Positions 7,401 to 57,002 of a DNA stretch of 64,000 nt are shown one piece after another; position 1 is the stretch's first letter; each line of letters begins with the position of its first letter. Source of the stretch: Oopsacas minuta (Eukaryota; Animalia; Porifera); contig JAKMXF010000319.1 of assembly GCA_024704765.1 (NCBI GenBank), forward strand, positions 1 through 64,000, written 5' to 3'. The position numbers and the translations under genes are program-made. The notes below the pieces were generated by a model. It was given only the letters and a program-made list of their open reading frames with translations. It ran no database searches and was not told where the DNA came from.

Positions 7401-7690
7401 CTAAAGTTATTTGGCGGTCTCCTCTCTATTTCTTCACCCTCTGGTATCATTTTTACTTCAGAATAATAATCAGTTTTAGATGAAATAACTTGTGAAGCCA
7501 TAGCGAACAGATCTAAATACGTTGATGGATCAACCAAACCTTCTTCTATGCTCTGTTTATGTGTTTTTAGCTTTTCTCTAGAACTTTTATTCATAGAATC
7601 GAATAACTTTGATGAAGTTTTCATAACTGTTCCTCCTCTCAATCGACGTTTCCATGTTTTCTCTTTATTTTTCGGCGTAACTTCTGCCAT
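1468..7690 (-). CDS. Munc13-4/BAIAP3-like C2-MUN-C2 vesicle priming protein (multi-exon)
   Basis: ATG at 7690. C2A exon (KSKIQRKTLDPVWEETF...MEVWDDD, 6141-6368). Helical MUN-type exons at 5700-2539. Terminal exon with C2B (LIRGENLPKMDTIGSCDPYIK...LSLYDHD) and stop at 1468. UNC13D and BAIAP3 cannot be told apart by eye. Confidence 0.8.
2932..2999. mobile_element. 68-bp Tc1/mariner-type MITE in intron
   Basis: Ends CAGTATACTTCGCTTAAT and ATTAAGCCGAGTCTACTG are inverted repeats with 3 mismatches, flanked by TA on both sides. Confidence 0.7.
5397..5436. repeat. (GTTT)10 microsatellite in intron
   Basis: Read directly. It explains the TNKQ repeats at the end of ORF 5362..5700. Confidence 0.9.
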
Positions 7691-8615
7691 TCTTTCTTAG
7701 ATCCTAACGAACGAATTTAAAATTAAGCATTTCTCATACTCAAAGCATTATTCTTCTAATATTCTGAATTATTTTAATTATTAGAGATGGTCTATACTCA
7801 ATCATTTGTTTTACAGAATTATGAATTTATTTTCCCGCTCAATAATGTCAGGCTCTTCCAAGTTGAAAATTAGATTCACAAATTTCATATTTTCAATACG
7901 GCAATTGCCCGAATTTATGTTATAATTTTTAGCGATTCGTCCAATAGACAGCATAATGACAGAATTATTACTTGTATCTCTTCGACATTGCATTTATACA
8001 AATTCGGATATTTGTTTCAATCTGTAATACAACTATGAATTGATTGAATGCCTCCAATTCGAGGTAATCTGAGCTGAATTGTTTATCTAATTAACTTGCA
8101 GTCTGATATCTAAAGTGTAGGCTAGTTTGTGGAAGTAAAATTGAGAAATCTATCTTCTAATTCGTCAAAATATGTCCAATTGAGTATCTCATATTAATAT
8201 TTACTGATTCAGTGAACTTCAGGCGAATTCTGTTTACCAAAAAGTCTGCAATTTGCTGATTAGACTAACGCACAATTATGCTAATTTCTTGGTTATTTAA
8301 TTAGTTGACATGTTATTACGAGGTAATCAATTCCAGGAAGATAATGGTTGCATCAGGGAGATTTTGCTAACTTCACATCTAATGATGTTGTTATTCCCTC
8401 TCAGCACACCTACTTGGAAAACCTGAAAACTTGACAATTCCAAGTCGATTTGATTTATTTGAGTATCTTTGAGCAATTAGTATAGTGGATACCGGTTATA
8501 AGAACATCATCACTAGCTTGGTTCATAATACTCGACCCTAGCTGCATATATTTACTAACTGTGTACACGTACGTACATTCTGAAACCTCATTGAATTGGC
8601 CTTTCTAGATATAAA

Positions 8616-10120
8616 ATGCCTAAACGCACTCCAAAGCGTGTAATAGTCCATCCTTTGGTACTACTGAGCGTGGTAGATCACTTCAATAGAATGTCAAAAG
8701 AAGGAAAGAGAGTAGTCGGTTGTCTTCTCGGATCCTGGCGTTCTAACGGAGTTGTAGACGTTTCGAACAGTTTTGCTGTACCATTTGATGAAGACGACAA
8801 CGACCCAACTATCTGGTACTTAGACCATAACTACATGGAGCAAATGGCTGCCATGTTCCGCAAGGTAAACTCCAAAGAGAGAGTAATAGGATGGTATCAT
8901 TCAGGACCTAAACTGAGGATAAATGACGTAGCTGTGAATGATATAGTCTCTTTGTATTGTAATGATCCCATTCTGGTGATGATACTAGCTCAACCCAAGG
9001 AGTTAGGTTAGTTAGATATTTGTTTATGGATACAGCCAACTCCTGTTATATCGAATCTCAAGGGACCGAATTAATTACTTGGATATAAGCGGGTATTTCC
9101 ATATATTCTTGTTCGATAACTGGAGTTGACTGTATTCCACAGGCAATTGTGCTATATATCCGATTTATTTATCAACCAGTAATTACTCTGATCTCTATAT
9201 AGGAATACCAACAGACGCATACTACGCTGTAGAAGAAATACACGACGATGGAACTCCTACCAGTAAGACGTTCAACCATGTAGCCTCAGAGATCGGAGCA
9301 GAAGAAGCAGAAGAAGTAGGAGTAGAGCATTTACTCAGGGATATAAGAGATACTACTATAGGTTCTCTGTCTCAATCTGTGTCTAGTCAGTTACAGAGTG
9401 TTAAGGGACTTATGGGGCATACTCAGCATATAGAGTTATATCTTTCTAAGGTATGTACTGGGTTTTACAAGTGAAGATATCAGGAAACTGCGTGATATCG
9501 ATACTATTTAAATATCGCGAATTTTCCACATTTTTCGATATTTTATACAAAACGAAAAATATCAGCTGATGTTCCCTCATGTTTTGACTCGATATTCTAA
9601 TACAATCAACTCCAGTTTTATCGAAGCTCTAGAAACCGCGATACAAAATATATATAAACGGGTTCGATACAAGTGATATAACCGAAGGAATTTATGTTAC
9701 ATTTACGGTTTCTGTACAATTTCTGAATTGTATATAATCATGAATTGGCTATATTCTTACAGTACTCCGATCTGCACTACCAGTCTGCTACTATACATAT
9801 TGCATTTGGTTTTTACCTATTAATTACTACAGGTATTAGACGGCACATACCCTGTCAACCACACAATAATATATCTCCTACAAGACATCCTATCTCTCCT
9901 ACCTGACCTAACCCTTCCTCAATTAATCTCATCCTTCTACTCAAACGCTAATGACCGTATGCTTGTAATATATATCGTATCTCTCGTGAGAGCTATCATA
10001 GCTCTACATGATCTTATTGATAACAAGCTATCCAACCAGGCCATCGAGAAGGAAGTTAAGGAAGAGAAAAGGAAGGATAAGACTGTTGTAAGTAAGGAAA
10101 CAGAGAAGGAGAAAGTTTGA
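8616..10120 (+). CDS. PSMD7: 26S proteasome lid subunit Rpn8 (3 exons)
   Basis: MPN domain [17 protein letters not shown]...[11 protein letters not shown]. Exon 2 [19 protein letters not shown]. Exon 3 [29 protein letters not shown] at 10118-10120. Confidence 0.95.
9033..9132. mobile_element. 100-bp Tc1/mariner-type MITE in PSMD7 intron 1
   Basis: 5' end CAGCCAACTCCTGTTATATCGAA, 3' end TTCGATAACTGGAGTTGACTG, TA on both flanks. Confidence 0.75.
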
Positions 10121-10455
10121 ATTGTTGTGTAGTTTGTTAGTGGAAATTATCAAAGTTATAATTACTTTAAGATTATTCGCTTCAGTCAGGGCCTTAGGAA
10201 GCGTTAATTCTATGCTCCATGAGTCAGCATTGCCACTTTGTATTACTATGCTTACATTGGCCAATTTCGTAAATGTTTGATGCCAAAATCGTGAGATTTT
10301 CGAAAATCCGACGAGTTGATGGAGCAAATGGCTTCCATGTTGGGTGACAATTATGTCATTCTTCAGTCGAATAGTTAACGCCCCCTAGCAGACATTTTTC
10401 ACTTCCACCATTTGAGTATTTCATTTCTATATTTCAATTCAGCAAGGTTTACATA

Positions 10456-13400
10456 ATGCTAAGTATCAGATCACTTAAACATATTTCTAAATCGCGATTA
10501 ATCTCGCCTGAATGTGCACCCTCTCAAAACATCCGCCCTCGCATGTTTCACAGAGGTACAGTACACGATCCGACTAAGAACCCAATCACTAATGAGAGCG
10601 CTACTAAGATATTGAGAGAGATGGTTGGACATTTATGGCCTCATGACGCTCCTTCTCTCAAATACAGAGTTGTAGGTTTGAATTTTAGTTAATGAGGAGC
10701 TTGTTTTAGCTCTACATGATATCCATCTAAGCATTTCATTACAATTATCTTATTATATGACGTCATCATATTACAAAGTGGTCTCTTCATAGAAAATATT
10801 CTATTGTATTGTGTAGTTGAATATCACTGAGAAAATAGTGAAAAATTTCTAATACAGGTCTTGTGCCGGGTCTCCAGAGGTTTACTTGTAATTCCTATAC
10901 AGTGCCATACAGATAATCCATCGCAATGGGTCATCGAAATCTGTACAATTAAGCTATACACGGGTTTGTGGATTATCCGTGTGACGCTATAATGACAATA
11001 TTCATACGGCAGGTAATCTTATACTGTAGTGGAGCTTAAACAAATTTCTAATTTACAGTAGCCTTATGATCAAACATAATTCTTCTATGTAGATATATAT
11101 TCAATTTCTCTCTACAGGTGCTCTTAGCTGTTTATTCGGTGCTAAGCTTCTCAATGTACAAATTCCATTCCTTTTCAAATACGCTATAGATTCACTACAG
11201 GTATTACCTCAGTTAGATTCTGTAGAACATACTATCATTACTGGATCTGCTGCATTTGTTATTGGATATGGAGCTGCTAGATTAGGTATATATGTATTTG
11301 TATTTATTTATTTGTTTGGCTCAATGATTCCTTATAATTATCCATACAAATACAGGCTCGACTTTATTCAGCGAACTCCGTAACTCAATCTTCGCTAAAG
11401 TAGCTCAGACTTCAATTCGGAAACTAGCACGTCGTTCGTTCTCCCATCTCCATTCCTTAGACCTAGAATTCCATCTCTCACGTGACACAGGTGGATTATC
11501 ACGTGCTCTAGACAGAGGCACAAGAGCTATAAACTTCATATTGAATGCTATGCTGTTTAACTTGTTACCTACATCATTTGAAGTATTGCTAGTAGCAGGA
11601 TTACTTAGTTATAACTGTGGTTGGGAGTACGGAGCTATTTCTATGCTTACTATGGCTGTATATAGTATATTCACTTTCTCAGTTACTCAATGGAGAACTA
11701 AGTATGTAAGTTTTCAAGTTGGTTATAACGACGTGATTCTGAACCTCCATAGCTTGAAAGATATTGGTTATACTCCGCTTAAAGCGAAACGAATCGCGGT
11801 TCCTAACACTTCGTTATAACGAGAGTTTATTGTGTATTTCTTCTTAGGAAATTTCCGATAACTTAAATATCCTTAAGTAACTGGCATTACATACTAATTT
11901 GATGTATGCAACACTGGAATCGTTCTCATTTTTGCAAATTTTCAGCAAATTTCTAGTGAGAACTTAAGCTTGAGATTTTGATAAGTGAATATTTCAGGGT
12001 CACCCTAAACGATACATTAATACGTCATAAGATATGTATTTTTCCAGGATTCAATGTTCATATCAAATTGTGTTGCATTCTGAGTTACTTAATGTAATAT
12101 TCAAGATTTCCTATTTCACTTATATACGTTACTATTAGAAAATGACAAATGTCTATCCATTACAGATTCCGTGTTGAGATGAACAAAGCAGACAATTCGG
12201 CAGGTCGCAGGAGTTTAGAATCTCTCTTAAACTATGAAACAATAAAATACTGTAATGCAGAAGAGCTAGAAGCAGAGAACTATGACGTATCTCTACAGGA
12301 ATACCAGAAAGCTAGTCTCAAGACTACAACATCCCTATCACTACTTGGATTCGGACAGTCTGCTATATTTACATTAGCTATGGCTGGTACTATGTTAATG
12401 GCTGTTAATGCTATTCAAGCAGGTTCTATGACTCCTGGTGATCTGGTTATGATTAATGGACTGCTGTTCCAGTTGTCTATACCTCTAAATTTCTTAGGTG
12501 AAAAATATAAAGTAGACTCCGGTTAACAGAGCCATAATCAAATGTTGTGTAAATATGATTAATCATATGATAAATCATTTAGATATAGTTAGGAATGGCA
12601 AAATCGGACTCTACGTACAGAATTACTCCTGAAAACATGTTGAAACTGTTTTTTTTTTCATCGAAAGGTGTGATAATTTCATTTTATGAAGGTGCTAATA
12701 TCCGTCCAAAAATGTATATGTATACCAATTTTCATGTTATTCAGACTGCTAGATTTCGCATGACCGCACGGACGGACATACTAACATAGCTGTACGTGTT
12801 TAATTATCTGTTTACTTCCTGTGTAGGATCTGTTTACCGTGAGATAAGACAATCCCTCATAGACATGCAGAATATGTTTGTACTATTCGACAAGAAACCA
12901 GTAATAACAGAGAAGATCGGAGCTCCTAGCATTATAGTATCTAATACAGAATCTGCTATACAATTTGATGGAGTATCTTTTGGTTATTCTCCTGAGAAAA
13001 TGGTTAGAATTTATGTATATTCACGATTCCTAACCCTGGGGTCTATCGTCCCTTTGGTTGTCTACGGACGTCAGCGGGGGTCTATGAGGTACAGATAATT
13101 TGGTGAAATAGGTTACTACTTTTATATGAAGAATTCCTGAAATCTAAATCAATGAATTCCTTACTTAAAATTATGTGGAAATAGGCAATAATTGGTTCAT
13201 ATACAAATGTATATGTAAACTCCAAAAAGGGCCTGTGAAATCGGGGAACTTCTGGAAATGGTCTCTTAAAAATGAAGCACAGACGTGAAATTAGGCAGAA
13301 ATGTTGTAGTATTTTCGGCGTTCTCTGGGGCGTCCGAGAATCTAGCATAGTATGGCATTATATTAAGCCTGTCCTGCAGGCTTAATATAATTTAATTCGT

Positions 13401-39289: not shown

Positions 39290-39813
39290 ATGGAATCAAT
39301 AAGTGAACCATCTCTCCGCTTTAATCTCCAACAGATATCATACTGTCGAACTACTACAGCAGTTCTGACCGGCTCTACAGCTGGCATACTAGGATTAACT
39401 GGCGTATTAGGATTTGTATTATACTTGAGTACAGCTGTATTAGTTTCTGTTATACTATTGGCGAAAGCTGGAGCTAATTCTGCTAGCTTTTTTCCATCAA
39501 AATCTAGGTTTGTTTCGGGATTTTAGAAGCATATATTTTCGTAATAAAAGTTTTGGTATCTACATCTGGAAACGAAAATGACATTCTGATTTTACCGACA
39601 TTTCAAAAAATTATGAAACTTTCGATATTTGATTTTTTGCATATTTTAATGATATTTTGATGTTTTCCAATATTCTTTATTCAACTGTTTTATCGACAGC
39701 AACATTTATTTTCATTTCTCTCCTTTAGTTTATATCTTCAAGGAGTGTTAGAGGAAATTGTAACGTATATCCTATTCTGGACATTACTATATGGTATTGT
39801 ACATGTGTATTAG
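39290..39813 (+). CDS. EMC6: ER membrane complex subunit 6 (2 exons)
   Basis: NLQQISYCRTTTAVLTGSTAGILGLTG..GF, and exon 2 TYILFWTLLYGIVHVY-stop. Confidence 0.93.
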
Positions 39814-39864
39814 TTCAATAAAGTATAATTAAACTGGCTCACTATTCTCAATATTTATATACAG

Positions 39865-39915
39865 CAAGGTTGCAACCGAATAGTTCAATATTCAGTTCGA
39901 TCGGTTTCAACCTTG
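39865..39915. repeat. 51-bp inverted repeat / miniature TIR element downstream of EMC6
   Basis: CAAGGTTGCAACCGA and TCGGTTTCAACCTTG are complementary at 14 of 15 positions. Confidence 0.65.
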
Positions 39916-40191
39916 ATATACAGTCAACTTCCGTTTTATCGAAGCTATTTGATTCTTTACTGCTTCACGAAGTGATTCATTACCCCTTGAAAGAAGTTGA
40001 GTTGACTCCGCTTACAACGATATATCGTTTATAAAGGAAATGAAACAGAGATCCAGTCGCTTGCAGGTCATGCACACCACCAGATCAACAAATGTATAAT
40101 GAATAAAATATTTAAACTACATCAAACGAAATATATTAATCAAGTTAATACTTTAATAGACAATAATATATTTTAATCGCTGTACCCAAAG

Positions 40192-41271
40192 CTAGGAGTC
40201 TATACCATTGTACGGAACGACTCTTGTTACACCTTCGATATCTGGTTCTTTTGGTGGACAATTTTCTATATTTTGTAACTGTACAACATCAGGGGTAGCC
40301 CATGTAGACGGCGGCACATATAAATCTTCATATCGTCTGCTGGGTTTGATAGAGTTCTTTCCGCAATAATAAAAACACAGCCAATGTTTTAGATAGCAAA
40401 CAACTCCACATGCGATTAGTATCAAACAGCACACGAGTATGATTAGTCCCAGTAGTGGGAATAATGCCCAATCCAAACAGAAATCAAACTGGAGGTTGTA
40501 TTCTAAAGTCAAGCATGTTAGTTTGAATTGTGTTGTTACAAATGTTGGTTGAGTTTCAGTTGATTCTGTCCCACTCGTCGAGATTGTTGGTGGGTCAGTT
40601 ATAGTAGTGCCTGATTGTGCTGGTGATCCAGTTCTGATTGTTGATCGTGACATGGTGGATGTTTGAGTAGTTGGTGTCGTTGGTATCGTTGGTATCGTTG
40701 CTGTCGTTGCTGTCGTTGTGGCAGTACTGAGGTTGTAATTACAGCCTAAACTGTATATTTCCGTATCATTCAATACACTGTCTCTACAAGCCATCGGTAA
40801 AGCACATACCTTATCTGTTGTTGTAGCCAGGAAGAAAGCCATTTGTAAGCACGATATATTACGTGTTCTATCATTTTCAGCACTGGCCATGCTCCCATTA
40901 GATGTTGAAAGAAGGTAAACAGCCTTCGTTACTGTGAACACAAAATCATTTGAGGAAACAAGATTCAAACTCTCAATTCCTCTTACCACAAGCGGTATAG
41001 GATTAATTGCATTTGTCGCATTACAATTCATCATCTCTTCTTCTGTATTAACTTGAAATACATTCTCGTACAAATCTGCATCATTGTTGATAAACGATAG
41101 CGTATCTCCAACATAAAATCCACAAGCACTTTGGCTCGGTGGTAGAATCGTGTTATTAGCCAAAGGCTCTGTTCCCAAACAGAAATCACTTTGCCAGATC
41201 ACATTCCTATCGCAGCCTTGCGTCGCGATGATAAAAATAAAAAAGACCCATAATATAAAATACGAATTCAT
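40192..41271 (-). CDS. Ephrin-like type I membrane protein 1 (signal peptide, cupredoxin/ephrin-like domain, Thr-rich stalk, TM, Tyr-containing tail); intronless
   Basis: VGDTLSF, YENVFQV....MMNC and YLLSTSNGSMASAEN...SCLQMAF resemble ephrin-B (IGDKLDI, YEYYKLYLV...C, YITSTSNGSLEGLEN...C). TM WALFPLLGLIILVCCLILIACGVV. Confidence 0.75.
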   Translation of the reverse strand: MNSYFILWVFFIFIIATQGCDRNVIWQSDFCLGTEPLANNTILPPSQSACGFYVGDTLSFINNDADLYENVFQVNTEEEMMNCNATNAINPIPLVVRGIESLNLVSSNDFVFTVTKAVYLLSTSNGSMASAENDRTRNISCLQMAFFLATTTDKVCALPMACRDSVLNDTEIYSLGCNYNLSTATTTATTATIPTIPTTPTTQTSTMSRSTIRTGSPAQSGTTITDPPTISTSGTESTETQPTFVTTQFKLTCLTLEYNLQFDFCLDWALFPLLGLIILVCCLILIACGVVCYLKHWLCFYYCGKNSIKPSRRYEDLYVPPSTWATPDVVQLQNIENCPPKEPDIEGVTRVVPYNGIDS

Positions 41272-42123
41272 TATACATTCAATACAGCACTGTACAGACG
41301 GTTTAATCTTAATAATATAGTGGATTTAATGCCTCAAAAATAATAATATAAAAGCTTAAATGCATATAGATATATATTTCATTTGAAAGAGTATTAGGTT
41401 TCCTGATAATTCAATGGTTTTATTCTTTAGAAGGCTACGTATTGTTATAAAGCGATGACGTAATTAATGCCATTATAAGGAAAATTTATGTTCTTCACAA
41501 TAAAGATTTGAATTATAATTCAAATAATAGTGAGTTAATTCTTCTTGTTACTTCCTTATATGGATTCTTTCCATTCTCAATGATATAGCAACTTATAATC
41601 CCCTTATGGAACTAATCAGCGTATTCTTAATTTTGTATAGTGGCTTCTACATATTAGAATACCGAATTTTATACAGAATATCGATGAAATTTGCAAACTA
41701 TTTGTAATCAAAATAGGAGCACCGCTCCACCCTCCGCCCCTGATTCATAAATAGATCGCGCTCCTCAAATATTTGCTCTGATGACATCAGAGCGTTATGA
41801 AGTATTCCCATCGGAAAGGTCACGCATGAATTAATTAGTTAAAATTAAAATGCATTCAATGGCTTAGATTATAGCTCTCTCGTGCTATGAATTATGAAAT
41901 CGCGTTTTTATTGGTGAAATCACCATTGACAAGTGTGCTTTGAAATAATAGATAAATGAATGTGTCGCAGTTCAAAAAGTCAAAAAGGTTTAGAAATACT
42001 GAATTAAGAGCTGAAACTAAATATTTATAATTAACATTAACCAAAAAAGTATACAAAAATTATACACAGTAATTACAAACAACAATACAAATATTTACTA
42101 GTTAAAACATTCAATGAATTTTA

Positions 42124-42825
42124 TCACATTTCAACATCAGTAACTTCAGTCTTTTCCTTATGAAATGATTGCTGTATCAGCATCCTACGAGATCTACTTG
42201 AGAAGAAAATCGCGCCTACAAGAGTAGCTACAATACAAATTATCAGTAGAGGCACACCAATGTAAATGATTAATAGAACATTCATGCTTAATCCTGAACA
42301 ACCGAAAGTGTCGTTTGTATTATCAGTGAGAATACTACTTCGCATGCAATTTTCTGTTACAATACACTCATTCGCGCTATTTATCACTCTAAACGCGAGT
42401 TGTAGACATGGTGGATGAATTTTCCTGTTGTTTTCCGCCGCGTGTTTGCTGCCATTTGATGTAGAAATGAAGTAAACTTCCTCTCCAAAGCGAAAATTTT
42501 CGCTGTCAATGTTAAACGTGTATGAATCACTAATTATGACTAAATCAGATGTTGAATTGATAGAAGAGCAACTTATTAAATCATCCCTATCTCGCACACG
42601 AAACAAGTTTTCATAGTTATTGCGATTCAAGTGCTCCAATGTGATATTCGATCCTATTTCGAATTCACAAAGTTGGTCAAGGCTGTTGGGAGGGAGAAAT
42701 GAAGTGGACAAACGGTTTTCTGCGGTATCTTCACAAAAATCGCGATCCCATATAATATTATACCCGCAAGATTTCGCAGTTGGAATTGCAAAAATGATTA
42801 CAATGATTAAAATATTGAAATTCAT
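42124..42825 (-). CDS. Ephrin-like type I membrane protein 2, paralog without the Thr stalk; intronless
   Basis: Signal peptide from the second Met (MNFNILIIVIIFAIPTAKS). IIWDRDFC, YENLFRV....LISC, YFISTSNGSKHAAEN...PCLQLAF. TM LLIIYIGVPLLIICIVATLVGAIFF. Confidence 0.75.
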   Translation of the reverse strand: MNFNILIIVIIFAIPTAKSCGYNIIWDRDFCEDTAENRLSTSFLPPNSLDQLCEFEIGSNITLEHLNRNNYENLFRVRDRDDLISCSSINSTSDLVIISDSYTFNIDSENFRFGEEVYFISTSNGSKHAAENNRKIHPPCLQLAFRVINSANECIVTENCMRSSILTDNTNDTFGCSGLSMNVLLIIYIGVPLLIICIVATLVGAIFFSSRSRRMLIQQSFHKEKTEVTDVEM

Positions 42826-43287
42826 ATTTTCGCTTATTTTATTGCGAATTTCGTAATATTTATACATTCGGGAAATTCAAATTTCTATATTTTTTTGTCG
42901 AGAGAGCGCTGCTAGCCACAATTTTAGTGGAGTATACCAACTTACACTGAAACTATCTTTCAACATGATAATTAGGTTATTTCATTCAATTTCGAAGAAC
43001 TACACAATAAATAACTTTCAATGTATATCGTATACAATAAGAACCTTATTCGAATGTGGTTCCATACATGCTTACAACGTTAGCTATTCCATTGTAAAGA
43101 CAATAAATGTTGGATAATTCGAATCATGAATAAGTTAAAACCCACCATACACGATACAATTTAGTTGCATGCAACAAGACAATTTACAAGTTGCAACAGT
43201 GTAACATGGGACAGAATTACCCTCAAATCTCCGAAAACAAATTTGGGTCATCCTGTATGGTGGTAGGCTTAACATATTCATCTATAG

Positions 43288-43615
43288 CAGCTGTTCCCAA
43301 CATTTTCACCAGTGGATCCCAAATACAGTGGAACCTGGATCATCCGCCGTCGACACCTCTAAATCCGGAAGACCTCTATAATAATTCGACAGTGCTTCTG
43401 ATCTGAAATAGCTTCCGATAATATAATACAAATTCCCTGCATAACCTCAAAGATTTGAAATTGACAAAACTTTCATGCCCCATAGCGTGTTGGTCTATGC
43501 AAGTTCCACTTACTACCAGTTTAATACATTGTGTGTAGACTACTGTCATACGAATTTTGAGATAATGTGTTCGCCCGTGAGAAACTAAGATGTATCCCTA
43601 GCTTGGGAACCGCTG
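43288..43615. mobile_element. hAT-type MITE with 8-bp target site duplication
   Basis: TIRs CAGCTGTTCCCAAC and CTTGGGAACCGCTG (12/14). Flanks ATCTATAG and ATCTACAG (7/8). Confidence 0.8.
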
Positions 43616-44406: not shown

Positions 44407-47400
44407 ATGTTTAACAAATTTGTGTTGATTCAATTGCTTCTGTTTATGGTAAGACTATTCGTAATGTCCACAAAATTTTAAGATATTTTATTTGTGTGTC
44501 TTTTAGATATGTATACAGAGGGCATCTGCTGTCCCTGCCGCTACAGGTAAGTTTGCATTTTTCGTGTTATTTCTTATACATTTTCGGGTATATTAGTGGG
44601 AATAATTGTATATCGAACATTTAACTCGTTGCTTCGCTATGAACTTTCATATGAAATTTTGTTAATTTACATTAAACTTTTTACAGTACACTCCGCTTAA
44701 ACGGGACAGTTGGGGGCGCTGGATTAGGTCGAATTTAATATGTAAGCATTAGGTCGAATTAAGATGTTGTCGATAGATCGATATAGAAAATGGATTTATA
44801 GAAACGAGGACGTGATAGGACATTTTATTGTATTAATTATAAACCCGTACCATTGGGAGGGGATTAAGGATTTTGCTCACTACCTTATCGGTCTGGGAGT
44901 TTTCATTTGTACTCCTTATTAAGCTACCTAGGGACGGGGATGTGGAGTCCATGCTAATTTTGTGTTTGGGTGGACTTTTGTTGGGTTAATTATTAGAAGT
45001 TTATAAAATGGGGGATCGCTGGATTTTGCATATAAAACATTTGTGCAGGTTTTTTAGAAATTTAAGAAAGCATTCACTGTTTCTCAAAATATGAATTGTA
45101 CTTAAACAAGAGATATCCATCGCTAATTTACATTCGCTTTATCGACAATTCACCTTGACTTGATTTCGAACTAATGCATACGTTCTAAATTCGACGTAAT
45201 GCAGGGGCCTGGGACAGTTACCAAATACGCATATATTCCCAGCCCATAGAGATAATACAAACATTTTGGTAACTACAATTAAATGATTATGTTCAGGATT
45301 ACGTCACAATGGTACGAGATATCACATCAAAAAGCATTATCAGGGTTTGCGAAGTTGGGTATGTATTATAGAATGGCTATCTTGATATTGCTATAATTCT
45401 AACAATTAACGAGTCATAACTGAATATTGACATAGAAGTGGAATTGATATTTTGTATACAAATATATTTCAAAGATTTCATAACTGAACTTTGAATTCAG
45501 AGCTCAATATTGTGATTATCCCCTTAGCATTTTCCAACATATCAACCTAATAAGCGATCGCTTGACGTCTTTTTGAGTTTGTCTTTGCATAAACATGCTT
45601 GTTGAAATGTTGATTCTTTTAGTCCCCAATGCTCCTCCGACGAATATTGTTCTCACACCGCTCAGTTCTTCAACAATACAAGTATCATTCGGTCCACCAC
45701 CGTCTACAAATCGTAATGGAGACATTCTTTCCTACTCAATCAATTACACTGGATCACCCTTTGATACAAGTACAGTAACATTAAACGTTCCAGGTAGTAC
45801 CGATCCAGAAGAATCCTACTCAGAAGTTATTAATTTTTTGCAAGAATTTAATACATATGACGTTACCCTGGCCGCTGTGAATGCACAGGGAGTGGGAGTT
45901 GAAAGCACTCCTCAGTTAGTACAGACTTTTGCTGATGGTAAGTACATTACTAAAGAATTAAACCATTCTTTCCAACTCTCATTGAATACTTTACACTTGT
46001 ATATTCTTCATAATATATATTCTACATTTTTGCATTTCTAGTTCCACTTGCAGCACAAGATCTGATGCTATCAGTTTTAAGTGCAACAAGCATTCAAGTA
46101 GATTTCTCCCCACCTCTGCCAGAGGAACAGAATGGTCTAATAACATCGTATATAATACAATACATCGGATTAAACGTAGACACTATGCAAGATGATGACA
46201 CAACCAGTATCACAGATACGACCTATCCAGCATCAGACCAAATTTCTTATATCCTTACACAATTGGAAGAATTTGAAGATTACACTATAACAGTGTTTCC
46301 TGTTAATTCAGCAGGAATTAGTTTTGATCCTCTGTCTGAGTCAGCTATCACCCTTTCCGCAGGTAAAAATAGTACACATCATATGCTCAAAATGATGCAA
46401 TTTTTTGTATTTATAGACCAGTGCACGCAGTTTATAAGAATACAACTGGCATAAAATATACAGGAATATACGAGAACTGATTTCCGCCGGCATGTTCTTA
46501 TAACCCGCATCCACTGTATAATGCATACACCGTTGCACACTATACGTAAGTGGTTCAAAACATTCATCACTCGCGGACCATAGGATTATAAATACTTTTA
46601 TGTTTTCTGGAACTATGGAAGACCCCTTCTGCTGATTATTGCATACAGGTGTAATCTGGGCATGCGTTTGCTGTTGCCTCACATCATGTCCAGTTGTCTT
46701 ACTTCGTGAAGCGACCTAGAAAGCAAGTCACAATAGTTACAACAAAATAATAAATACACTCAGAAATTCAAGTTTCTTAAAACTTACTTTGCCTAGTCAG
46801 AGTATGTAATAGGTATTGTGATTCATTAATCTTTGTTTAGTTCCTGACTCAGCACCAATTAATGTCAACATCATACCGGATCAAAGAAGTTTGACCGTAA
46901 CATGGGATCCTCCACCAGCAATATCACAAAACGGACAAATCTCAAATTATTTGATTGCCATTACAGGAGATCCATTTCCTTTTACTGAGACTTCTCCAAT
47001 AATAATTACAGCTAGTGGATCATATCCTGATACCCAACAATATAGCGAAGATATTACAGGATTGGAAGAGTATAATTCTTACGACATTAGTATTGCAGCT
47101 TCAAATATGATTGGAGATGGTCCATTCAGCCCAGTTAGCACTCAAATGACACTAGAAGCAGGTTAGAATTATTGATGCATAATTTCCATTTTGTGATAAA
47201 GGAAACACCTAAACTAATGTAATTAGGTAGGTGTTACAGGCCCGAACATTTCAACTTGCTCTACAAGTAAACTGGCTTTGGTCATAGTTTTAACTGTGCT
47301 GAATACACTATAATATTGTAGGAGGCAAGTATTGGTATTTCTCAGGTATCTCAACATATCATTATATATGGCCACACGTTGTATAAAATTCTGTATCATG

Positions 47401-50400
47401 ACCACAACCCAAGTTTTGGAAACTACAATTATTTTCTATAGCAGGGATAAATAAGAAGTGCATTGTAGTTTATTCGAAGTCAATAACTCATCATATATGG
47501 GTATATTCAGGATTACGTCACAATGGTACGAGACATCACATCAAAAAGTATCATCAGGGTATGCGAAGTTGGGCATGTATTATAGAATGGCTATCTTGAT
47601 ATTGCTATAATTCTAACAATTAACGAGTCAAAACTGAATATTGACATAGAAGTGGAATTGATATTTTGTTTACAAATATATTTCGAAAATTTCATAACTG
47701 AACTTTGAATTCAGAGCTCAACATTGTGATTATCCCCTTATCATTTTCCAACATATCAACCTAATAAGCGATCGCATGACGTCTTTTGAATTTGTCTTTG
47801 CATAAACATGCTTGTTGAAATGTTGATTCTTTTAGTCCCAGATGCTCCTCCGACGAATATTGTTCTCATGGCGCTCAGTTCTACAACAATGCAAGTATCA
47901 TTCGGACCACCACCGTCTGCAAATCGTAATGGAGACATTCTCTCCTACAAAATCTATTACACTGGATCACCCTTTGATACATGTAGGGTAACATTAAACG
48001 TTACAGGTAGTATCGATCCAGAAGAATCCTACTTAGAGGATATTAATTTCTTGCAAGAATTCAATACATATGACGTTACGCTGGCCGCTGTGAATGCACA
48101 GGGAGTGGGAGTTGCAAGCGCTCCTCTGTCAGCACAGACTTTTGCTGATGGTAAGTACATTACTAAAGAATTAAACCATTCTTTCCAACTCTCATTGAAT
48201 ACTTTACACTTGTATATTCTTCATAATATATATTCTACATTTTTGCATTTCTAGTTCCACTTGCAGCACAAGATCTGATGCTATCAGTTTTAAGTGCAAC
48301 AAGCATTCAAGTAGATTTCTCCCCACCTCTGCCAGAGGAACAGAATGGTCTAATAACATCGTATACAATACAATACATCGGATTATACGTAGACACTGTG
48401 CAAGATGAAGTCATAACCAGTATCACAAATACTAACTATCCAGCATCAGACCAAATTTCTTATATCCTTACACAATTGGAAGAATTTGAAGATTACACTA
48501 TAACAGTGTTTCCTGTTAATTCAGCAGGAATTAGTTTTGATCCTCTGTCTGAGTTAGCTACCACCCTTTCCGCAGGTAAAATAGTACACATCATATGCTC
48601 ATAATAATGCAATTTTTTGTATTTATAGACCAGTGTATGTAGTTTATAAGAATACAACTGGCATGAAATATACAGGAATATACGAGAACTGATTTCCGCC
48701 GGCATGTTCTTATAACCAGCATCCACTGTATAATGCATACACATTTGCACACTATACGTAAGTGGTTCAAAACATTCATCACTCGCGGACCAAAGGATTA
48801 TAAATACTTTTATATTTTCTGGAACTATGGAAGACCCCTTTTGCTGATTATTGCATACAGGTGTAATCTGGGCATGCGTTTGCTGTTGTCTCACATCATG
48901 TCCAGTTGTCTTACTTCGTGAAGCGACCTAGAAAGCGAATCACAACAGTTTCCACCATATATTACATCTAAGTTATTTAATACGTCTTTTAATGAAGACG
49001 TATTACGTATTATACGATCAATCTACAATTTTTGGTGACGTAACTTCTAATAGGTTGATTTCCCCAAAATATATTTTACATAAAAACAGTAGTTCTCGAA
49101 TTGTTAATGAGAAATGTCAGCATAGTTTCCCAAATAATATACAGATAATACTTATAATAATGTGACTTATACAAGTCTAACAATCTAAATATCTCATATT
49201 TCGATGTTAACCTATATGTATAAACACTCCAATAGATCATATAGGATACGTTATACGCGTATTATACAACTTCCTATGTTAATACACATAGAAATTTAAG
49301 TTTCTTGAAACTTACTTTGGCTGGACAATATGTAGACCTTATTGATTCAGAGTACGTAATAGGAATTGTGATTCATTAATCTTTGTTTAGTTCCTGACTC
49401 AGCACCAATTATTGACAACATCATACAGAATCAAAGAAGTTTGACCGTAACATGGAGTCCTCCACCATCAATAACACAAAACGGACAACTCTTTGATTAT
49501 TTGATTGTCATTACAGGAGATCCATTTCCTTTTACTGAGACTTCTCCAATAATATTTACAGCTAGTGGATCATATCCTGATACTCAACAATACAGCGAAG
49601 ATATTACAGGATTGGAGGAGGATAATTCTTACGACATTAGTATTGCAGTTTCAAATATGGAGGGAGATAGTCCATTCAGTCCAGTTAGCACTCAAATGAC
49701 ACTAGAAGATGGTTAGAATGATTGATACATAATTTCCAATGTACAAATATTCTGAATTTCCCCAAAATCTCGTGAACATAGGATTATTCATGTCAAGTAT
49801 ATGCGTATATTTCATAACTCGGTCCAAGCCAGGCACGCCGGCGCATTGGTAAACAATATGCTCTGAAAATTCCAATCCCCAATTTGTGATAAAGGAAACA
49901 CCTAACCAATGTAATTAGGTAGGTGTTACAGGCCCGAACATTTCAACTTGCTCTACAAGTAAACTGGCTTTGGTCATAGTTTTAACTGTGCTGAATACAC
50001 TATAATATTGTAGGAGGCAAGTATTGGTATTTCTCAGGTATCTCAACATATCATTATATATGGCCACACGTTGTATAAAATTCTGTATCATGACCACAAC
50101 CCAAGTTTTGGAAACTACAATTATTTTCTATACCAGGGATAAATAAGAAGTGCATTGTAGTTTATTCGAAGTCAATAACTCATCATATATGGGCATAATC
50201 AGGATTACGTCACGATGGTACGAGATATCACATCAAAAAGTATTATCAGGGTTTGCGAAGTTGGGCATGTATTATAGAATGGCTATCTTGATATTGCTAT
50301 AATTCTAACAATTAACGAGTCAAAACTGAATATTGACATAGAAGTGGAATTGATATTTTGTTTACAAATATATTTCGAAAATTTCATAACTGAACTTTGA

Positions 50401-53400
50401 ATTCAGAGCTCAACATTGTGATTATCCCCTTATCATTTTCCAACATATCAACCTAATAAGCGATCGCATGACGTCTTTTGAATTTGTCTTTGCATAAACA
50501 TGCTTGTTGAAATGTTGATTCTTTTAGTCCCAGATGCTCCTCCGACGAATATTGTTCTCATGGCGCTCAGTTCTACAACAATGCAAGTATCATTCGGACC
50601 ACCACCGTCTGCAAATCGTAATGGAGACATTCTCTCCTACAAAATCTATTACACTGGATCACCCTTTGATACAAGTACAGTAACATTAAACGTTACAGGT
50701 AGTATCGATCCAGAAGAATCCTACTTAGAGGATATTAATTCTTTGCAAGAATTCAATGCATATAACGTTACGCTGGCCGCTGTGAATGCACAGGGAGTGG
50801 GAGTTGCAAGCGCTCCTTTGTCAGCACAGACTTTTGCTGATGGTAAGTACATTACTAAAGAATTAAACCATTCTTTCCAACTCTCATTGAATACTTTACA
50901 CTTGTATATTCTTCATAATATATATTCTACATTTTTGCATTTCTAGTTCCACTTGCAGCACAAGATCTGATGCTATCAGTTTTAAATGCAACAAGCATTC
51001 AAGTAGATTTCTCTCCACCTCTGCCAGAGGAACAGAATGGTCTAATAACATCGTATACAATACAATACATCGGATTAAACGTAGACACTATGCAAGATGA
51101 TGACACAACCAGTATCACAGATACGACCTATCCAGCATCAGACCAAATTTCTTATATCCTTACACAATTGGAAGAATTTGAAGATTACACTATAACAGTG
51201 TTTCCTGTTAATTCAGCAGGAATTAGTTTTGATCCTCTGTCTGAGTCAGCTATCACCCTTTCCGCAGGTAAAAATAGTACACATCATATGCTCAAAATGA
51301 TGCAATTTTTTGTATTTATAGACCAGTGCACGCAGTTTATAAGAATACAACTGGCATAAAATATACAGGAATATACGAGAACTGATTTCCGCCGGCATGT
51401 TCTTATAACCCGCATCCACTGTATAATGCATACACCGTTGCACACTATACGTAAGTGGTTCAAAACATTCATCACTCGCGGACCATAGGATTATAAATAC
51501 TTTTATGTTTTCTGGAACTATGGAAGACCCCTTTTGCTGATTATTTCATACAGGTGTAATCTGGGCATGCGTTTGCTGTTGCCTCACATCATGTCCAGTT
51601 GTCTTACTTCGTGAAGCGACCTAGAAAGCAAGTCACAATAGTTACAACAAAATAATAAATACACTCAGAAATTCAAGTTTCTTAAAACTTACTTTGCCTA
51701 GTCAGAGTATGTAATAGGTATTGTGATTCATTAATCTTTGTTTAGTTCCTGACTCAGCACCAATTAATGTCAACATCATACCGGATCAAAGAAGTTTGAC
51801 CGTAACATGGGATCCTCCACCAGCAATATCACAAAACGGACAAATCTCAAATTATTTGATTGCCATTACAGGAGATCCATTTCCTTTTACTGAGACTTCT
51901 CCAATAATAATTACAGCTAGTGGATCATATCCTGATACCCAACAATATAGCGAAGATATTACAGGATTGGAAGAGTATAATTCTTACGACATTAGTATTG
52001 CAGCTTCAAATATGATTGGAGATGGTCCATTCAGCCCAGTTAGCACTCAAATGACACTAGAAGCAGGTTAGAATTATTGATGCATAATTTCCATTTTGTG
52101 ATAAAGGAAACACCTAAACTAATGTAATTAGGTAGGTGTTACAGGCCCGAACATTTCAACTTGCTCTACAAGTAAACTGGCTTTGGTCATAGTTTTAACT
52201 GTGCTGAATACACTATAATATTGTAGGAGGCAAGTATTGGTATTTCTCAGGTATCTCAACATATCATTATATATGGCCACACGTTGTATAAAATTCTGTA
52301 TCATGGCCACTTTACCCAGGTTGGATCATGTTGGTCATGTTTGGCTGAATAATGACGTAAAAATTTCTGTCGACAAGTTTGGTCATAAAAGACAGATTGA
52401 GACATTCTATATTTAGAGTTTCTGAATAATGAACACGTTGAGGATATCGCTTCTGTCTGTTTAAGAGAGTTGTCTGCTTCTCGGCGACTGCTAGGGTATT
52501 ACATTTGATTGCTAATTCATTCCGTTCCAGGAGGTTTGTCCGTTGTTGAGGGATTGTCTGCTTCTCTGAGTGTCCGTTTTTGAAGACTCCACTGTAGTTG
52601 ATACTTGTTACATTTTTCTAACCTTTTAGCACCTACTGGAGCTGCTCAAAATGTATCCATCAATTCAGTAACATCTAATTCTTTCAATATTTCATTTCTT
52701 CAACCAATTGGGCAATTGCAGAATGGTCCAATCTTAAGATACGACGTATTATATACTGGAGTTACATTCCAAACTAATAGTTTATTACAGAGCTTTTTTG
52801 TCACAGCAATGGACCCGACGTTAATATCATCTGAGATATTGGTAACTCTTTCAAATCTACAGGAATTCAATGATTATAACATTCAAGTTAGAGCTGTCAA
52901 TAGTGAGGGATCCGCCCCACTAACTATGGCAATACCTGGATCTACTTCTGAAGCAGGTAAGCATTCAATATACAATACACACTCGGTTATCCGAACACCT
53001 TGGTCATATACCTTTACAAGTTTGGTGATAGGATAACCGAAATAGCCACAGAGATTTCTCTGGGCTTGTAGGGCAACAAAAATTCCAGTATAGAACCCAG
53101 AAGGGCGAAAAGTGCCGAGGGTGAGACTCAAATTTGTAAGTTTATGTAAAAAGTGAATCTGCATGAAATAGTGCCAACATCCAGCCAGGAATACCTGAAT
53201 AATTCCTAGAATTGTATTTACATTAATATAATACATTTTTATTAGCTCCAGACATGGCTCCTATTCCCACACAAATTGCACAAGTCAACGCGACAAGCAT
53301 ATTTGTAGCGTGGCAACCTCCGCCAGGAATATCACAAAACGGACAAATAGTATCATATACTTTTTACATTACCGGATATCCTTTCTTTTATACGGACACG

Positions 53401-56400
53401 CCACCTGTTGTACTAGCTACTGGAGGGTATCCAGATACCCAATCATATAGCATAAACATTACAGGATTGGAGGAGTTCAACATGTATAACCTCAGTATTA
53501 TAGCTGAAAATAGTGCTGGATCGAGTCCACCAAGCGACTATATCACTGAAACAACACTAGAAGCAGGTTAGATATTAGTTATATTTGTAGCTCTCTAGAT
53601 TGTGATAAACATATTGATCAGTGCTAAAAAGTTTCAAAATGGGATTTTTCTAATGTTATCTCCTTGAATCAATTGATTTTAAAATATTTCCTGTATTTCC
53701 AGTTCCCGGACGTCCAAGGTTAATCGGTGTTCTTGTCCTGAACGCCACAACAATCCGCGTAGTCTGGAGAGCTCCACTTCCGGCCGATCAAAATGGCATA
53801 ATCCTCGAATACAACATAACCTTACTTCCTGTCAGTGATCTGCCTCCTCCTGCATTAGTAACGGTTGCAAAAGGCGGTAGTTATCCTGTCCCAGATACTG
53901 TATTATATGAAGAGGAAGTGACTGGCCTAGAAGAAGGTTTTGCATATGACATATTCGTGACGGCAGTTACCTCTATAGGACCAGGATTACCTAGTCTGTC
54001 AGTTAGAAGAGAAATGACTCCTGATATCGGTAGGTTTAAAAGATGTACTAAAGTGCAACCTCGATCATCTGAACTCGTTGGCTCCGCGCAAAAGCGTCCA
54101 GATAATCGAGGTCATTTATACATAGTGGAATAGGAACTGAGGCCAGGGGCATGTTCCGATATTCGAAGATTCAGATAATCGCACGGTATAACAAATAAAA
54201 TTAAGCCATGAAGAAGTCGGAACAGTTTGAAAATTAGCTAAAAGTTCATTGTTGAGGTCATGTTTCATGCCAAATAAATGTTGCCATAAATCAAATGTTC
54301 ATCCAAAGCCAAAATCTCTCTGGCAACAGTGCTGCACCTTCCCAATAATGAAGGCTTTTACTGATTTAATTATAGCTCCACCAAACCTTCCTCCCTTCGA
54401 CAGCAGTGCTGTTAACGTTACTTCTGTATCATCAACCAGCTTTGGGTTATCACTACCTAGCGTCTCAGCACTTTTTCTTGGAGGAGCGCATACTGGTTTC
54501 ACTTTCAAGCATCAAGGATACATAACTATTGAAAGTTTATTCTCTATTTCACAAAAAAAGAGAAGTGTAGACCATCTGTATACTACAGATCAAATTACAA
54601 TTGTTACAGAAATGGGGAATGATTTCCTGATCACAGGCCTTCTCCCTCATTTCAACTACATTATTAGTGTATCTGCTAACAACGCGGCTGGAACTTCAGG
54701 AGCTGTGTATTTAGCCGATATTCTATTGAATAGTGATGGTAAGTATTCTTTAACCGCCAATGTGCCTGGAAAATAGACACTTTTGAACATTAGCGGTCCT
54801 TGGGGGGGCGGATAAATGGGCATTGCCCCGGAATTAAAATCATGGCTCCGGCGTGTTGATGGGTGTGTCAGATCTTGGATCCGCCCCTGAATGTAACTAG
54901 GCTCATTAGTTTGAGTGGGAATACGATTATTTTGTGAGGCAGGATTTAGAAGGATAATTCGAATAATATGAGTTTGATGCCATTTTTCAATAATGATTCA
55001 GCATTTTAAGGCCTACATTTATAAATATTTTTCAGTTCCTTCCAGTCCTCCAATCAACATCACAGCAGTCACTACATCCTACTCTACAATAAACTACACA
55101 TGGGATAATAACCTAACTACTATCAACGGTTTTCTACTCAGCTACAGTCTATACTATTCAGAGTCTGGCGAGCCTGCAATTAAGATACCATTTGAAGTTA
55201 ACACACTTGGACCTTACACATTTGTACTGGATGGTTTAGCACCAAATACGCTATACTCATTCTTTATTGCTGTTGTTAATGAGATTGGAGATGGACCTAA
55301 TTCAACACTTGTATGGGCTACAACGCATCCAAAGGGTAAGTAACTTGAGTACATATTCGCTTTGAATTTGTCTTGCAGTCGGCACTTAGTGCCTTCATTG
55401 CTGCCGAATAGGCACTTTTAGGTGCCCTGCACGCATATTGATAAACCCCTGTTAGCAAGCCGCGCAGCGCAAACAAGGGAAGCGAAGGGCGCTTGTCTGG
55501 ATTACTACACCATATTTTATAACAAAAATTGAGAAAGAATCTATTTTATCGAATTACCTTTCCATTTTCTAGTTCCCGAATCGACAATACAACCATTTCC
55601 AAACACTGATTCTCCTCCTATCGAATCTCAAGGTAGTATACAGATACGAGTGCCTACACAGAACTCATTTCCAACAGCTAATATTGCGTAAGTAAATTCT
55701 AGTAAATGTCATAATGGTATATCGGAATCGGTCAGGCGAAGGTCTGAACATTTTTTGTATTGGCCAAAAATCTATGGGACACTTTCCAATTATCCTAAAC
55801 ACTTTCAAATTTCCTGACTACTTTTAATTTGCTTCCTTCGATCCCCATTGAATGGATGAATTGCTTAAAAAATACTACATGTGCCGACACTTTGGCACTA
55901 TTAATTGGAGGCCGTTGTGCCTGTATTCATGCGATATATCTTCCAATAGTGCAATTTATATCATATCTGATATGAATATTCCTCCTCTATTCACCCTACT
56001 ATCTGCCATGGACGCGTACAGTCTTATCAATTCGGAAACAGAGCCTAACATTCGTATACAAGCTGTGCTGGACAGCGAATATTGGAATGGAGAAGGTACA
56101 TATTTCCAGTTTACGATAGGTGATAATATTGAGACCAGTTATAATGGAAATTTGTATATCAATATGCCTCTACAAGCTGGAACCAATTATGAGTTGAGCT
56201 ACTATATTCTATTCTATGATGAAAATGAGGTAAGTTTGCCAATATAATTATCACAGGAATTGTTTATTCGTGATTTCATATTTCTACAGGATATTACTCC
56301 TGAGTTCTCTACAATTGGTTCTTTAGGGGATATTACTACAGCAGGTCAGTATATTCTGAAGTTTGATATATAGTAGACTCCATTCACTGACCAGAAAGGG

Positions 56401-57002
56401 AATACATGCAAATTGTATCTGGTAAATCGGGTCAAATTCGAAATTTTTGTATCGAAGCAGGTCGTAAGATTTGGGCCATAGGGTAGTTGCTGTCTAGGGG
56501 GAGCAAACGGGGTATTTGCCCTGGGTTTGAAAGTCCTGCCCCCTGCCCGGGTATACTAGAACCTGAGACAGGCTCTGCCATAGACCCATCTCAAATCCAT
56601 GTGGCCTGACCACCTATTCGCCTTGCCCCGAAGTGAACCACTATCGCGGAGTCTACTGTAAAATGCATATAACAATTGCTCAATGCTAATCGTATTATCT
56701 TTCTTTCTACAGCTTTCAATACACGTTTTTGCGTAGAATGCGTTGTATTCCCAATTGTAGTAGTTTTACTACTACTCCTCATCCTATGTATAATCGTATT
56801 ACTACTACTGTTCCTTTGCTATTGGTATAAGCAAAGGACAGCATTACAAGGTGCAGTGCATACAAGGAATTCTCCAATCAGGCAAGTACAATTGCAGAGA
56901 ATGGAAAAGAGTATACCTGATAAAGAACAGAATGAAATGTTTATAGCTGAACACGCTAAGGAAGATTTAGGTGCTGACTCATTGGAGAAGAAACCTCTAT
57001 AA
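44407..57002 (+). CDS. Single-pass receptor with 14 FN3 exons and an RPTP-type juxtamembrane domain, short tail, no PTP domain
   Basis: Signal peptide from exons 44407-44448 and 44507-44546 (MFNKFVLIQLLLFMICIQRASAVPAAT). Phase-1 FN3 exons start at 45623, 46042, 46841, 47836, 48255, 49391, 50528, 50947, 51746, 52630, 53246, 53703, 54376, 55036. FQFTIGDN...YINMPLQAGTNY at about 56100-56190. TM VVFPIVVVLLLLLILCIIVLLLLFLCYWY. Stop at 57002. Confidence 0.85.
45292..52307 (+). repeat. Three tandem copies of a 3-exon (A,B,C) FN3 cassette including introns
   Basis: Units start near 45292, 47506 and 50199. Exon A spacing is 2213 and 2692 bp. Near-identical translations recur in the ORF track. Confidence 0.95.

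Follow-up and report, generated by a model that had tools for sequence, protein, structure and literature searches.

Two open reading frames (ORFs) that lie head to tail on the minus strand of contig JAKMXF010000319.1 of Oopsacas minuta (Hexactinellida) raise the question of whether the membrane proteins they encode are ephrins or some other kind of cupredoxin, and, if they are ephrins, whether they still serve as ligands of Eph receptors. The contig accession is confirmed for this species (PMC10280926). The whole stretch of DNA that was analysed, called the window below, is 64 kb long and carries the two genes at these positions.

40192-41271, minus strand: gene A, predicted A-type glass-sponge ephrin (ORF of 359 amino acids plus stop; NCBI model of 359 amino acids).
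42124-42825, minus strand: gene B, predicted B-type glass-sponge ephrin (ORF of 233 amino acids plus stop; NCBI model of 233 amino acids).

The mechanical ORF of gene B extends to 42867, and the start at 42825 is the one seen in the orthologs and in the NCBI gene model. On balance, the two products, A and B, are probably divergent members of the ephrins that belong to a radiation specific to Hexactinellida and may act as contact-dependent ligands of Eph type.

The evidence for homology with ephrins is weak when single sequences are compared and clear at the level of the family. B matches the Pfam Ephrin profile (PF00812) at 17.2 bits (E 0.005; cut-off 25). A phmmer search of PDB sequences gave no match for A and only ephrin-B2 at E 1.3 for B, and when PDB sequences were searched with a profile, the first 13 matches were without exception ephrin-B2 and ephrin-B1, at E 0.07-0.9 only. 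A family profile was built from nine ectodomains and searched against 1.84 billion representative proteins, with 30 matches. Beyond the family, it reaches the coral ephrins P0033 (E 3.8e-6) and P0034 (E 6.1e-5). These score 76-78 bits on Pfam Ephrin, and the near relatives of P0033 are named as ephrins of Pocillopora and Stylophora. The matches to P0031 and P0036, two long proteins with several domains, were weak, local and repeated, and were taken as spurious. The alignment of the family with the coral ephrin alignment by hhalign gave a probability of 96.9% (E 1.6e-10, 114 columns), and with 50 family members it gave 96.7% (E 3.3e-10).

The AlphaFold models of A (predicted local distance difference test, pLDDT, 86.5; predicted template modelling score, pTM, 0.84) and of B (pLDDT 79, pTM 0.78) both predict a Greek-key barrel of cupredoxin type, and the nearest solved structures are ephrin ectodomains. 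The top 17 Foldseek matches of the B model in PDB are all ephrins (E 5e-6 to 1e-4), as are the top 19 matches of the A model in AFDB Swiss-Prot. With VIA-align, ephrins score Z 9.0-11.2 against the B model (21 entries), followed by phytocyanins (8.1-8.9) and plastocyanins (about 7). The top 21 entries for the A model are ephrins (Z 8.2-10.0), with phytocyanins at 7.5-8.2. The best structural matches are vertebrate ephrin-B1 and ephrin-B2 (1KGY, 1IKO, 6P7S; Z 9.5-11.2 over 112-118 residues, root-mean-square deviation 2.5-3.3). They share the type I transmembrane (TM) topology and the STSNGS strand-helix motif with A and B, but the sequence identity is 17-20%, and A and B differ in the absence of the ephrin-B tail and of the first disulfide and in a shorter G-H loop. 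Language-model features place ephrin clusters (cnidarian and chordate) first for both B (0.93, 209 shared features) and A (0.89, 197 shared features), with phytocyanins at about 0.72. Based on the profile, profile-profile, structure and language-model evidence, A and B are very probably homologous to ephrins. A first-pass annotation of this DNA had proposed a divergent ephrin-like family and had named non-ephrin cupredoxins as the best matches that would speak against it; the proposal holds, and ephrins came first in both the profile and the structure searches.

With coral ephrins as the root, the tree of 43 ectodomains of the family falls into six groups: B (support 97/98), A (90/74), D (100/99), W (100/99), S (100/95), and K, which forms a grade beside S. 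Gene B falls within group B and gene A within group A. A is closer to S and K than to B, so the A/B pair is old, and the two genes come from two old subfamilies rather than from a recent duplication. The other assemblies with family members are presumably from glass sponges, judging from identity and synteny. B followed by A is an adjacency kept in at least two other assemblies. In these two, the order on one strand is D-type, B-type and A-type (one of the two has an additional A-type gene), and the clusters adjoin a gene for a CCP1-like M14 peptidase. The D-type genes (L001 7276-8415, L002 7705-8736) lie upstream of the B-type gene and lack the STSNGS-helix segment by a deletion of ~13 residues. 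In the O. minuta window, B is followed by A with no D-type gene, and a gene for a receptor with FN3 domains stands in that place. Six other family genes in tandem (W, K and four S) form a second cluster between asparaginase and DNA polymerase lambda-like genes. It is observed in O. minuta contig JAKMXF010000345.1 (L005, 2882-12231) and in one other assembly (L004). In L005, no gene model covers the K-type copy at 4641-5522, and the W-type model P0032 seems truncated at the N-terminus. This brings the family in O. minuta to at least eight genes, in two tandem clusters. Those O. minuta paralogs that were seen with a name, LOD99_8868 and LOD99_8870, are called "hypothetical protein".

A and B each begin with a hydrophobic N-terminus, followed by a domain of ~130 amino acids and a short segment with Cys residues; a single strong TM segment then leads into the cytoplasmic tail. 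The domain, the single TM segment and a putative signal peptide, all read in the first pass, were thus found again. The membrane anchor expected of ephrins, one TM segment followed by a cytoplasmic tail, is present in both proteins, while a mucin-like stalk is found in A and not in B. The parts of the two proteins are as follows, in the order of each protein.

42769-42825, minus strand: putative signal peptide of B (residues 1-19), a hydrophobic N-terminus ahead of the first conserved Cys, C20.
42376-42768, minus strand: B residues 20-150, ephrin-like domain of receptor-binding type with a predicted cupredoxin fold (AlphaFold, Foldseek, VIA, hhalign).
42430-42474, minus strand: B motif YFISTSNGSKHAAEN, residues 118-132, which aligns with YYIISTSNGSLEGLDN of ephrin-B2.
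42292-42375, minus strand: B residues 151-178, post-domain Cys segment (C154, C160, C176), of low pLDDT in the model.
42211-42291, minus strand: B residues 179-205, TM segment (hydropathy maximum 2.9).
42127-42210, minus strand: B residues 206-233, short cytoplasmic tail with the end TDVEM, read from the sequence.
40816-41214, minus strand: A residues 20-152, predicted ephrin-like domain with C20, C31, C50, C83 and C141 (AlphaFold, VIA, AFDB Swiss-Prot).
40873-40917, minus strand: A motif YLLSTSNGSMASAEN, residues 119-133, which aligns with the same ephrin-B2 segment.
40738-40815, minus strand: A residues 153-178, post-domain Cys segment (C156, C162, C177), from sequence and alignment.
40486-40737, minus strand: A residues 179-262, mucin-like stalk of 84 residues rich in Thr, Ser and Pro, as read from the sequence.
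40399-40485, minus strand: A residues 263-291, TM segment (hydropathy maximum 3.26).
40195-40398, minus strand: A residues 292-359, Cys-rich stretch next to the membrane and a cytoplasmic tail that holds the tyrosine motif EDLYVPP (LYVPP at 40309-40323).

The domain of B carries the motifs IIW, YENLF and YFISTSNGS together with C20, C31, C53, C86 and C140. The two motifs aligned with ephrin-B2 are those on which the likeness to ephrins had first been noticed, and both are present as quoted.

The reference disulfides, taken from ephrin-A1 (3CZU_B), are Cys1-Cys3 (C51-C92) and Cys2-Cys4 (C80-C140). Cys2 and Cys4 are kept as C86 and C140 in B and as C83 and C141 in A. Neither varies among the 50 members, both line up with the coral ephrin cysteines, and C86 and C140 presumably pair with each other. 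The column of Cys3 (CxxP) is I, V, F or L in 50 of 50 family members, and adjoins a deletion of ~7 residues. The position of Cys1 is less clear. C53 of B, which the first-pass annotation described as a Cys before the GD/GS strand, is invariant, and hhalign and MAFFT place it (C50 in A) in the column of the ICP cysteine, Cys1. The distance from Trp to this Cys, counted by eye, is 27 in B, 24 in A, 27 in human ephrin-B2 and 26 in a coral ephrin. The structure-based register was not obtained by hhalign with alternative alignments. In the AlphaFold models of A and B, the segment before C53 is coil, and a strand hairpin with the GD/GS turn follows C53. The former is short and polar in most subfamilies, often with Pro or N-glycosylation sites; the latter resembles the I-G-D hairpin of ephrins and the V-G-D hairpin of phytocyanins. 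The structural alignments leave 16-17 residues unaligned in the models versus 23-25 in ephrin-B2. The hairpin after C53 and these counts fit better with the structure-based register, and the models make it quite probable that C53/C50 is not the ICP cysteine and that Cys1 is absent in A and B. From the cysteine map drawn earlier, the retention of Cys2 and Cys4 and the loss of Cys3 therefore stand, while the loss of Cys1 has the models on its side and hhalign and MAFFT against it. The same map had counted three new Cys after the domain. Two of them, C154 and C160 of B, have aligned counterparts in a Cys-x7-Cys pair of coral ephrins and are therefore not new.

Disulfide pairing was deduced from patterns of co-loss only. 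C31 and C176 are lost together in the W-type, in P0051 and in P0058, with P0014 as an exception, which suggests a C31-C176 pair. C20 and a Cys at position 56, three residues after C53, exclude each other: a member has one of the two and never both. This alternation is a single switch on the tree, at the clade of S and K. It is probable that the family-specific C20, C31 and C176 replace the canonical first disulfide.

The G-H segment is shortest in B, W and D (15 residues), intermediate in A (18) and longest in S and K (21-22), which equal the coral ephrins in aligned length. In solved ephrin-Eph complexes, the G-H loop enters the Eph pocket. Thus, the S and K types, whose loop is of canonical length, would be the best candidates for Eph ligands and B the weakest. 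The shortened loop also implies that any Eph binding still kept cannot follow the bilaterian mode in every detail.

The tails of A and B contain nothing alignable with ephrin-B tails, and the YYKV end is absent. The description "ephrin-B-like" of the first-pass annotation is thus right for the topology of a TM segment plus tail only. The tail of A contains E-D-L-Y-V-P-P and ends with NGIDS; in other species, tails of the A-type and the S-type again show L-Y-x-[PS]-P. The pY-x-x-P motif (pY, phosphotyrosine) is a preference of the SH2 domains of Crk, Nck and Abl. The S, K and D subfamilies repeatedly carry Y-x-N-L and Y-E-N motifs. Five of the seven B-type proteins end with [ST]-x-[IVA], which is PDZ-ligand-like, and B of O. 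minuta ends with T-D-V-E-M, two residues past such a motif. The D-type end E-I-[ST]-[SC]-L and the W-type end S-x-x-V are also PDZ-ligand-like. The tail motifs may serve as leads for reverse signalling, and are not findings of it. The tail of the S-type protein P0010 ends with Y-L-K-V, which resembles the Y-Y-K-V PDZ-binding end of bilaterian ephrin-B.

Outside the family, the profile search finds its closest relatives in the TM-anchored ephrins of cnidarians (P0033/P0037, Pocillopora; PF00812). They share YEN.W.V, YYFISTSNGS.S, Cys2, Cys4, the post-domain Cys-x7-Cys, a stalk and a TM helix with the family. In contrast to the family, the coral ephrins keep ICP and CxDP (Cys1-Cys3), have a G-H loop longer by 4-7 residues, and have no equivalents of C20, C31 and C176.

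If A and B are divergent ephrins that act as Eph-type ligands, each would be a type I membrane glycoprotein with a copper-free cupredoxin domain of ephrin type at the cell surface. The ectodomain would sit directly on the membrane in B and be raised on the mucin-like stalk in A. Both would be shown as contact-dependent ligands to Eph-type receptors on apposed membranes. A return signal might pass through the tails, by way of the conserved tyrosine motif of the pY-x-x-P kind in A and the PDZ-ligand-like C-terminus in B-type orthologs. Such a function as Eph ligands is plausible for the family.

Several observations weigh against this interpretation. None of the family members reaches the gathering score of Pfam Ephrin, and A has no Ephrin match at all; its sole related Pfam match is Cu_bind_like (PF02298) at 15.8 bits versus a cut-off of 20.8 (E 0.015, residues 51-93). 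The margin of Z over phytocyanins is small, 1-2 units for B and less for A, and for A ephrin-A1 (8.2-8.3) ties with mavicyanin (8.2). As the CxxP cysteine is gone, the first canonical ephrin disulfide is impossible in the family. The G-H loop is ~7 residues shorter in B and ~4 in A than in coral ephrins and the S-type. The tail motifs are short, and their recurrence was noted without statistical weighting. The tyrosine motif of A, moreover, lies in a stretch (40002-40335) that is empty in the RNA-like sequencing run described below (X4), with a depth of 1,000-3,900 just upstream.

The alternative that survives best is that these proteins are derived from ephrins and are no longer Eph ligands. 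B, W, D and partly A would have another partner or serve adhesion or recognition, and only S and K would be true Eph ligands. This is possible, although unlikely. The graded length of the G-H segment, which reaches the coral length in S and K only, agrees with it, as does the additional loss of the STSNGS-helix segment in the D-type. The subfamilies are old and separately conserved, as distinct functions would predict, and each of them has its own conserved tail ending. However, outside the loop the domain is highly conserved in A and B, also in the YFISTSNGS strand and the helix beside the interface, and no alternative partner is known for the short-loop subfamilies. The Eph ligand-binding domains of glass sponges are themselves divergent and expanded (PMC6485061), so that a co-evolved short-loop interface is possible. 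For the single proteins, the chances that A is still an Eph ligand are about even, and those for B are a little below even.

It is very improbable that A and B are not ephrins, being instead membrane-anchored phytocyanin-like or early-nodulin-like domains that lost copper independently and acquired STSNGS by convergence. The Cu_bind_like match of A, the only one it has, speaks for this, and so does its hairpin F-Y-V-G-D-T-L-S-F, which reads by eye like the strand 2-3 hairpin of phytocyanins and plastocyanins, with the G-D turn of the former. Phytocyanins (PF02298; mavicyanin 1WS8, umecyanin 1X9R, stellacyanin 1JER) are the next-best fold matches, close behind ephrins (Z 7.5-8.9), and the structure-based register gives a short connection after the hairpin, as in phytocyanins. 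Phytocyanins also have a disulfide equivalent to Cys2-Cys4 of ephrins. They are glycosylphosphatidylinositol-anchored or secreted proteins of plants. On the other hand, the profile matches beyond the family are coral ephrins and not plant or bacterial cupredoxins, with the hhalign result cited above; phytocyanins give no significant profile match. Ephrins come first in every structure search and in the language-model features. Pfam Ephrin is the commonest Pfam match in the family (13 glass-sponge members, all below the threshold), whereas Cu_bind_like is found in one of 31, and the non-ephrin origin is largely refuted. No His or Met is invariant in the conserved columns (26-31 family members), so the family has no type-1 copper site; the ligands of the His-Cys-His-Met/Gln site of phytocyanin-like and plastocyanin-like domains (PF02298, PF00127) are not conserved. 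Ephrins are thought to descend from monodomain cupredoxins (PMC6485061). Thus, a residual similarity to phytocyanins and a modest structural margin are expected for true ephrins.

The suggestion of the first-pass annotation that this is a proto-ephrin, which would make the short loops and the missing first disulfide surviving ancestral states older than canonical ephrins, has hardly any probability. In its favour, sponges are an early branch of animals and the short G-H and strand 3-4 connections are like those of phytocyanins. Against it, the G-H loop is of full length in the S and K paralogs of these genomes, and both the ephrin-like proteins of choanoflagellates and the ephrins of demosponges are reported to have Cys1 and Cys3 (PMC6485061), which makes the absence of Cys3 a loss. 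On the rooted tree, the long-loop S and K are nested within the family beside A, surrounded by the short-loop W, B and D, whose branching at the base is unresolved, so that the tree fits either polarity of the loop. A and B are therefore better described as part of a derived, lineage-specific radiation of six subfamilies, and the proto-ephrin status is not supported. The most canonical subfamily has already been published as a sponge ephrin, Snux_75319. The relevance to the origin of Eph-ephrin signalling that had been attached to the pair is not supported either, as the odd features are losses, either family-wide (Cys3) or limited to subfamilies (short G-H loop). The family leaves the picture of the timing of that origin unchanged.

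The family of divergent ephrins is not new in itself, as one member is already published. Krishnan et al. (2019) listed Snux_75319 of Sympagella nux, one glass-sponge ephrin, under "Ephrins in sponges" (PMC6485061, supplementary file 2). The sequence is plainly an ortholog of the S-type P0008/P0010, and thus a member of the same family. It shares the IIWDQ.YC start, YENLYRV, YYFISTS[DN]G, CLQ.AF, the post-domain Cys-x-Cys segment, the Thr-rich stalk and the TM helix, and it lacks the CxxP cysteine. Unlike A and B, it belongs to the S subfamily, has no C20, has an extra Cys three residues after C53, and has a full-length G-H loop. Table S3 of that study counts one ephrin in S. nux and none in Hyalonema, Rossella and Aphrocallistes, against 1-11 Eph receptors per species in the same four glass sponges, with 11 in Aphrocallistes vastus (PMC6485061). 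The A and B subfamilies were not found there, as 0-1 ephrins were counted per glass sponge. All non-bilaterian ephrins fall outside the A and B classes in the published trees (PMC6485061). Hexactinellids are not treated by Arcas et al. (PMC6993872), and ephrins are not mentioned in the genome papers of O. minuta and A. vastus. As far as searchable papers show, the size of the family, its six subfamilies, the conserved clusters, the universal loss of Cys3 and the graded G-H loop have not been described.

Published surveys thus report many Eph receptors and almost no ligands in glass sponges, and this family supplies candidate ligands. Ordinary Pfam thresholds miss its members. The ephrin repertoire of glass sponges would be larger and more varied than counted, and might even, though this is rather doubtful, be naturally split into Eph-binding and Eph-independent branches. 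If this is true, a ligand family has split in an animal with largely syncytial tissue. The natural variants, with no first disulfide and with three lengths of the G-H loop, can be used to ask which parts of an ephrin are needed for recognition by Eph.

A and B are 30% identical across 163 amino acids (E 5e-23), which indicates that they are true paralogs. The product of gene A is identical to the protein P0009 (100%, tblastn). Orthologs of gene A (P0011, P0012) show 45% identity, and those of gene B (P0002-P0007) show 45-52% over the full length. Four sequencing runs from one sample were compared. X1-X3 have even, DNA-like coverage, and that of X4 is very uneven. The word depth in X4 is 1,000-11,000 on both gene bodies, about 22 in between, and 0 upstream of B, and its contigs cover 40336-41337 (gene A) and 42006-42840 (gene B). 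X4 also shows adapter ends, and it is the sole run with a GT..AG joint (39504/39726, in a neighbouring plus-strand gene). None of the listed runs bears an RNA label; X4 was taken as RNA-seq solely for its RNA-like traits, namely the uneven depth, the adapter ends and the joint unique to it. The RNA-like coverage, together with orthologs at 45-52% identity, indicates that A and B are real, expressed genes. No X4 contigs cover 40002-40335, which corresponds to the last ~48 codons and the 3' untranslated region of gene A; such a hole proves nothing.

There is no splice joint within A or B in X4, so both coding sequences are uninterrupted, and the earlier description as a tandem pair of intronless paralogs is borne out. 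The coding sequence is uninterrupted in 19 of 19 family genes across five loci. The NCBI model of P0013 (L005) has an annotated intron, and tblastn reads the same stretch as continuous. Ephrin-B genes, in contrast, have several coding exons. O. minuta genes contain 1.59 introns on average (PMC10280926). The intronless structure is thus a trait of the family, yet unremarkable in this genome.

A third copy of the family was not found in the 64-kb window by tblastn. Dispersed repeats are indicated on both sides of the gene pair, at ~39835-40001 and ~43342-43508, where the DNA depth (X1-X3) is ~8-30x that of the flanks. As the two stretches show no mutual similarity, the idea that they are copies of one repeat was rejected.

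The FN3 gene occupies 44407-57002 on the plus strand, divergent from gene B. It encodes a receptor-like single-pass protein with multiple FN3 domains and contains near-identical repeated exon cassettes. The product of 1763 amino acids has only fn3 matches on record and no Eph ligand-binding domain. A linked ligand-receptor module of this gene and the pair was considered and rejected, because only fn3 matches were found and a D-type gene stands there in the two other assemblies. On the other side of the pair, a small gene for a TM protein lies on the plus strand at 39290-39526 and continues from 39726; its GT..AG intron is at 39505-39725, and the joint is seen in X4 only, at high depth.

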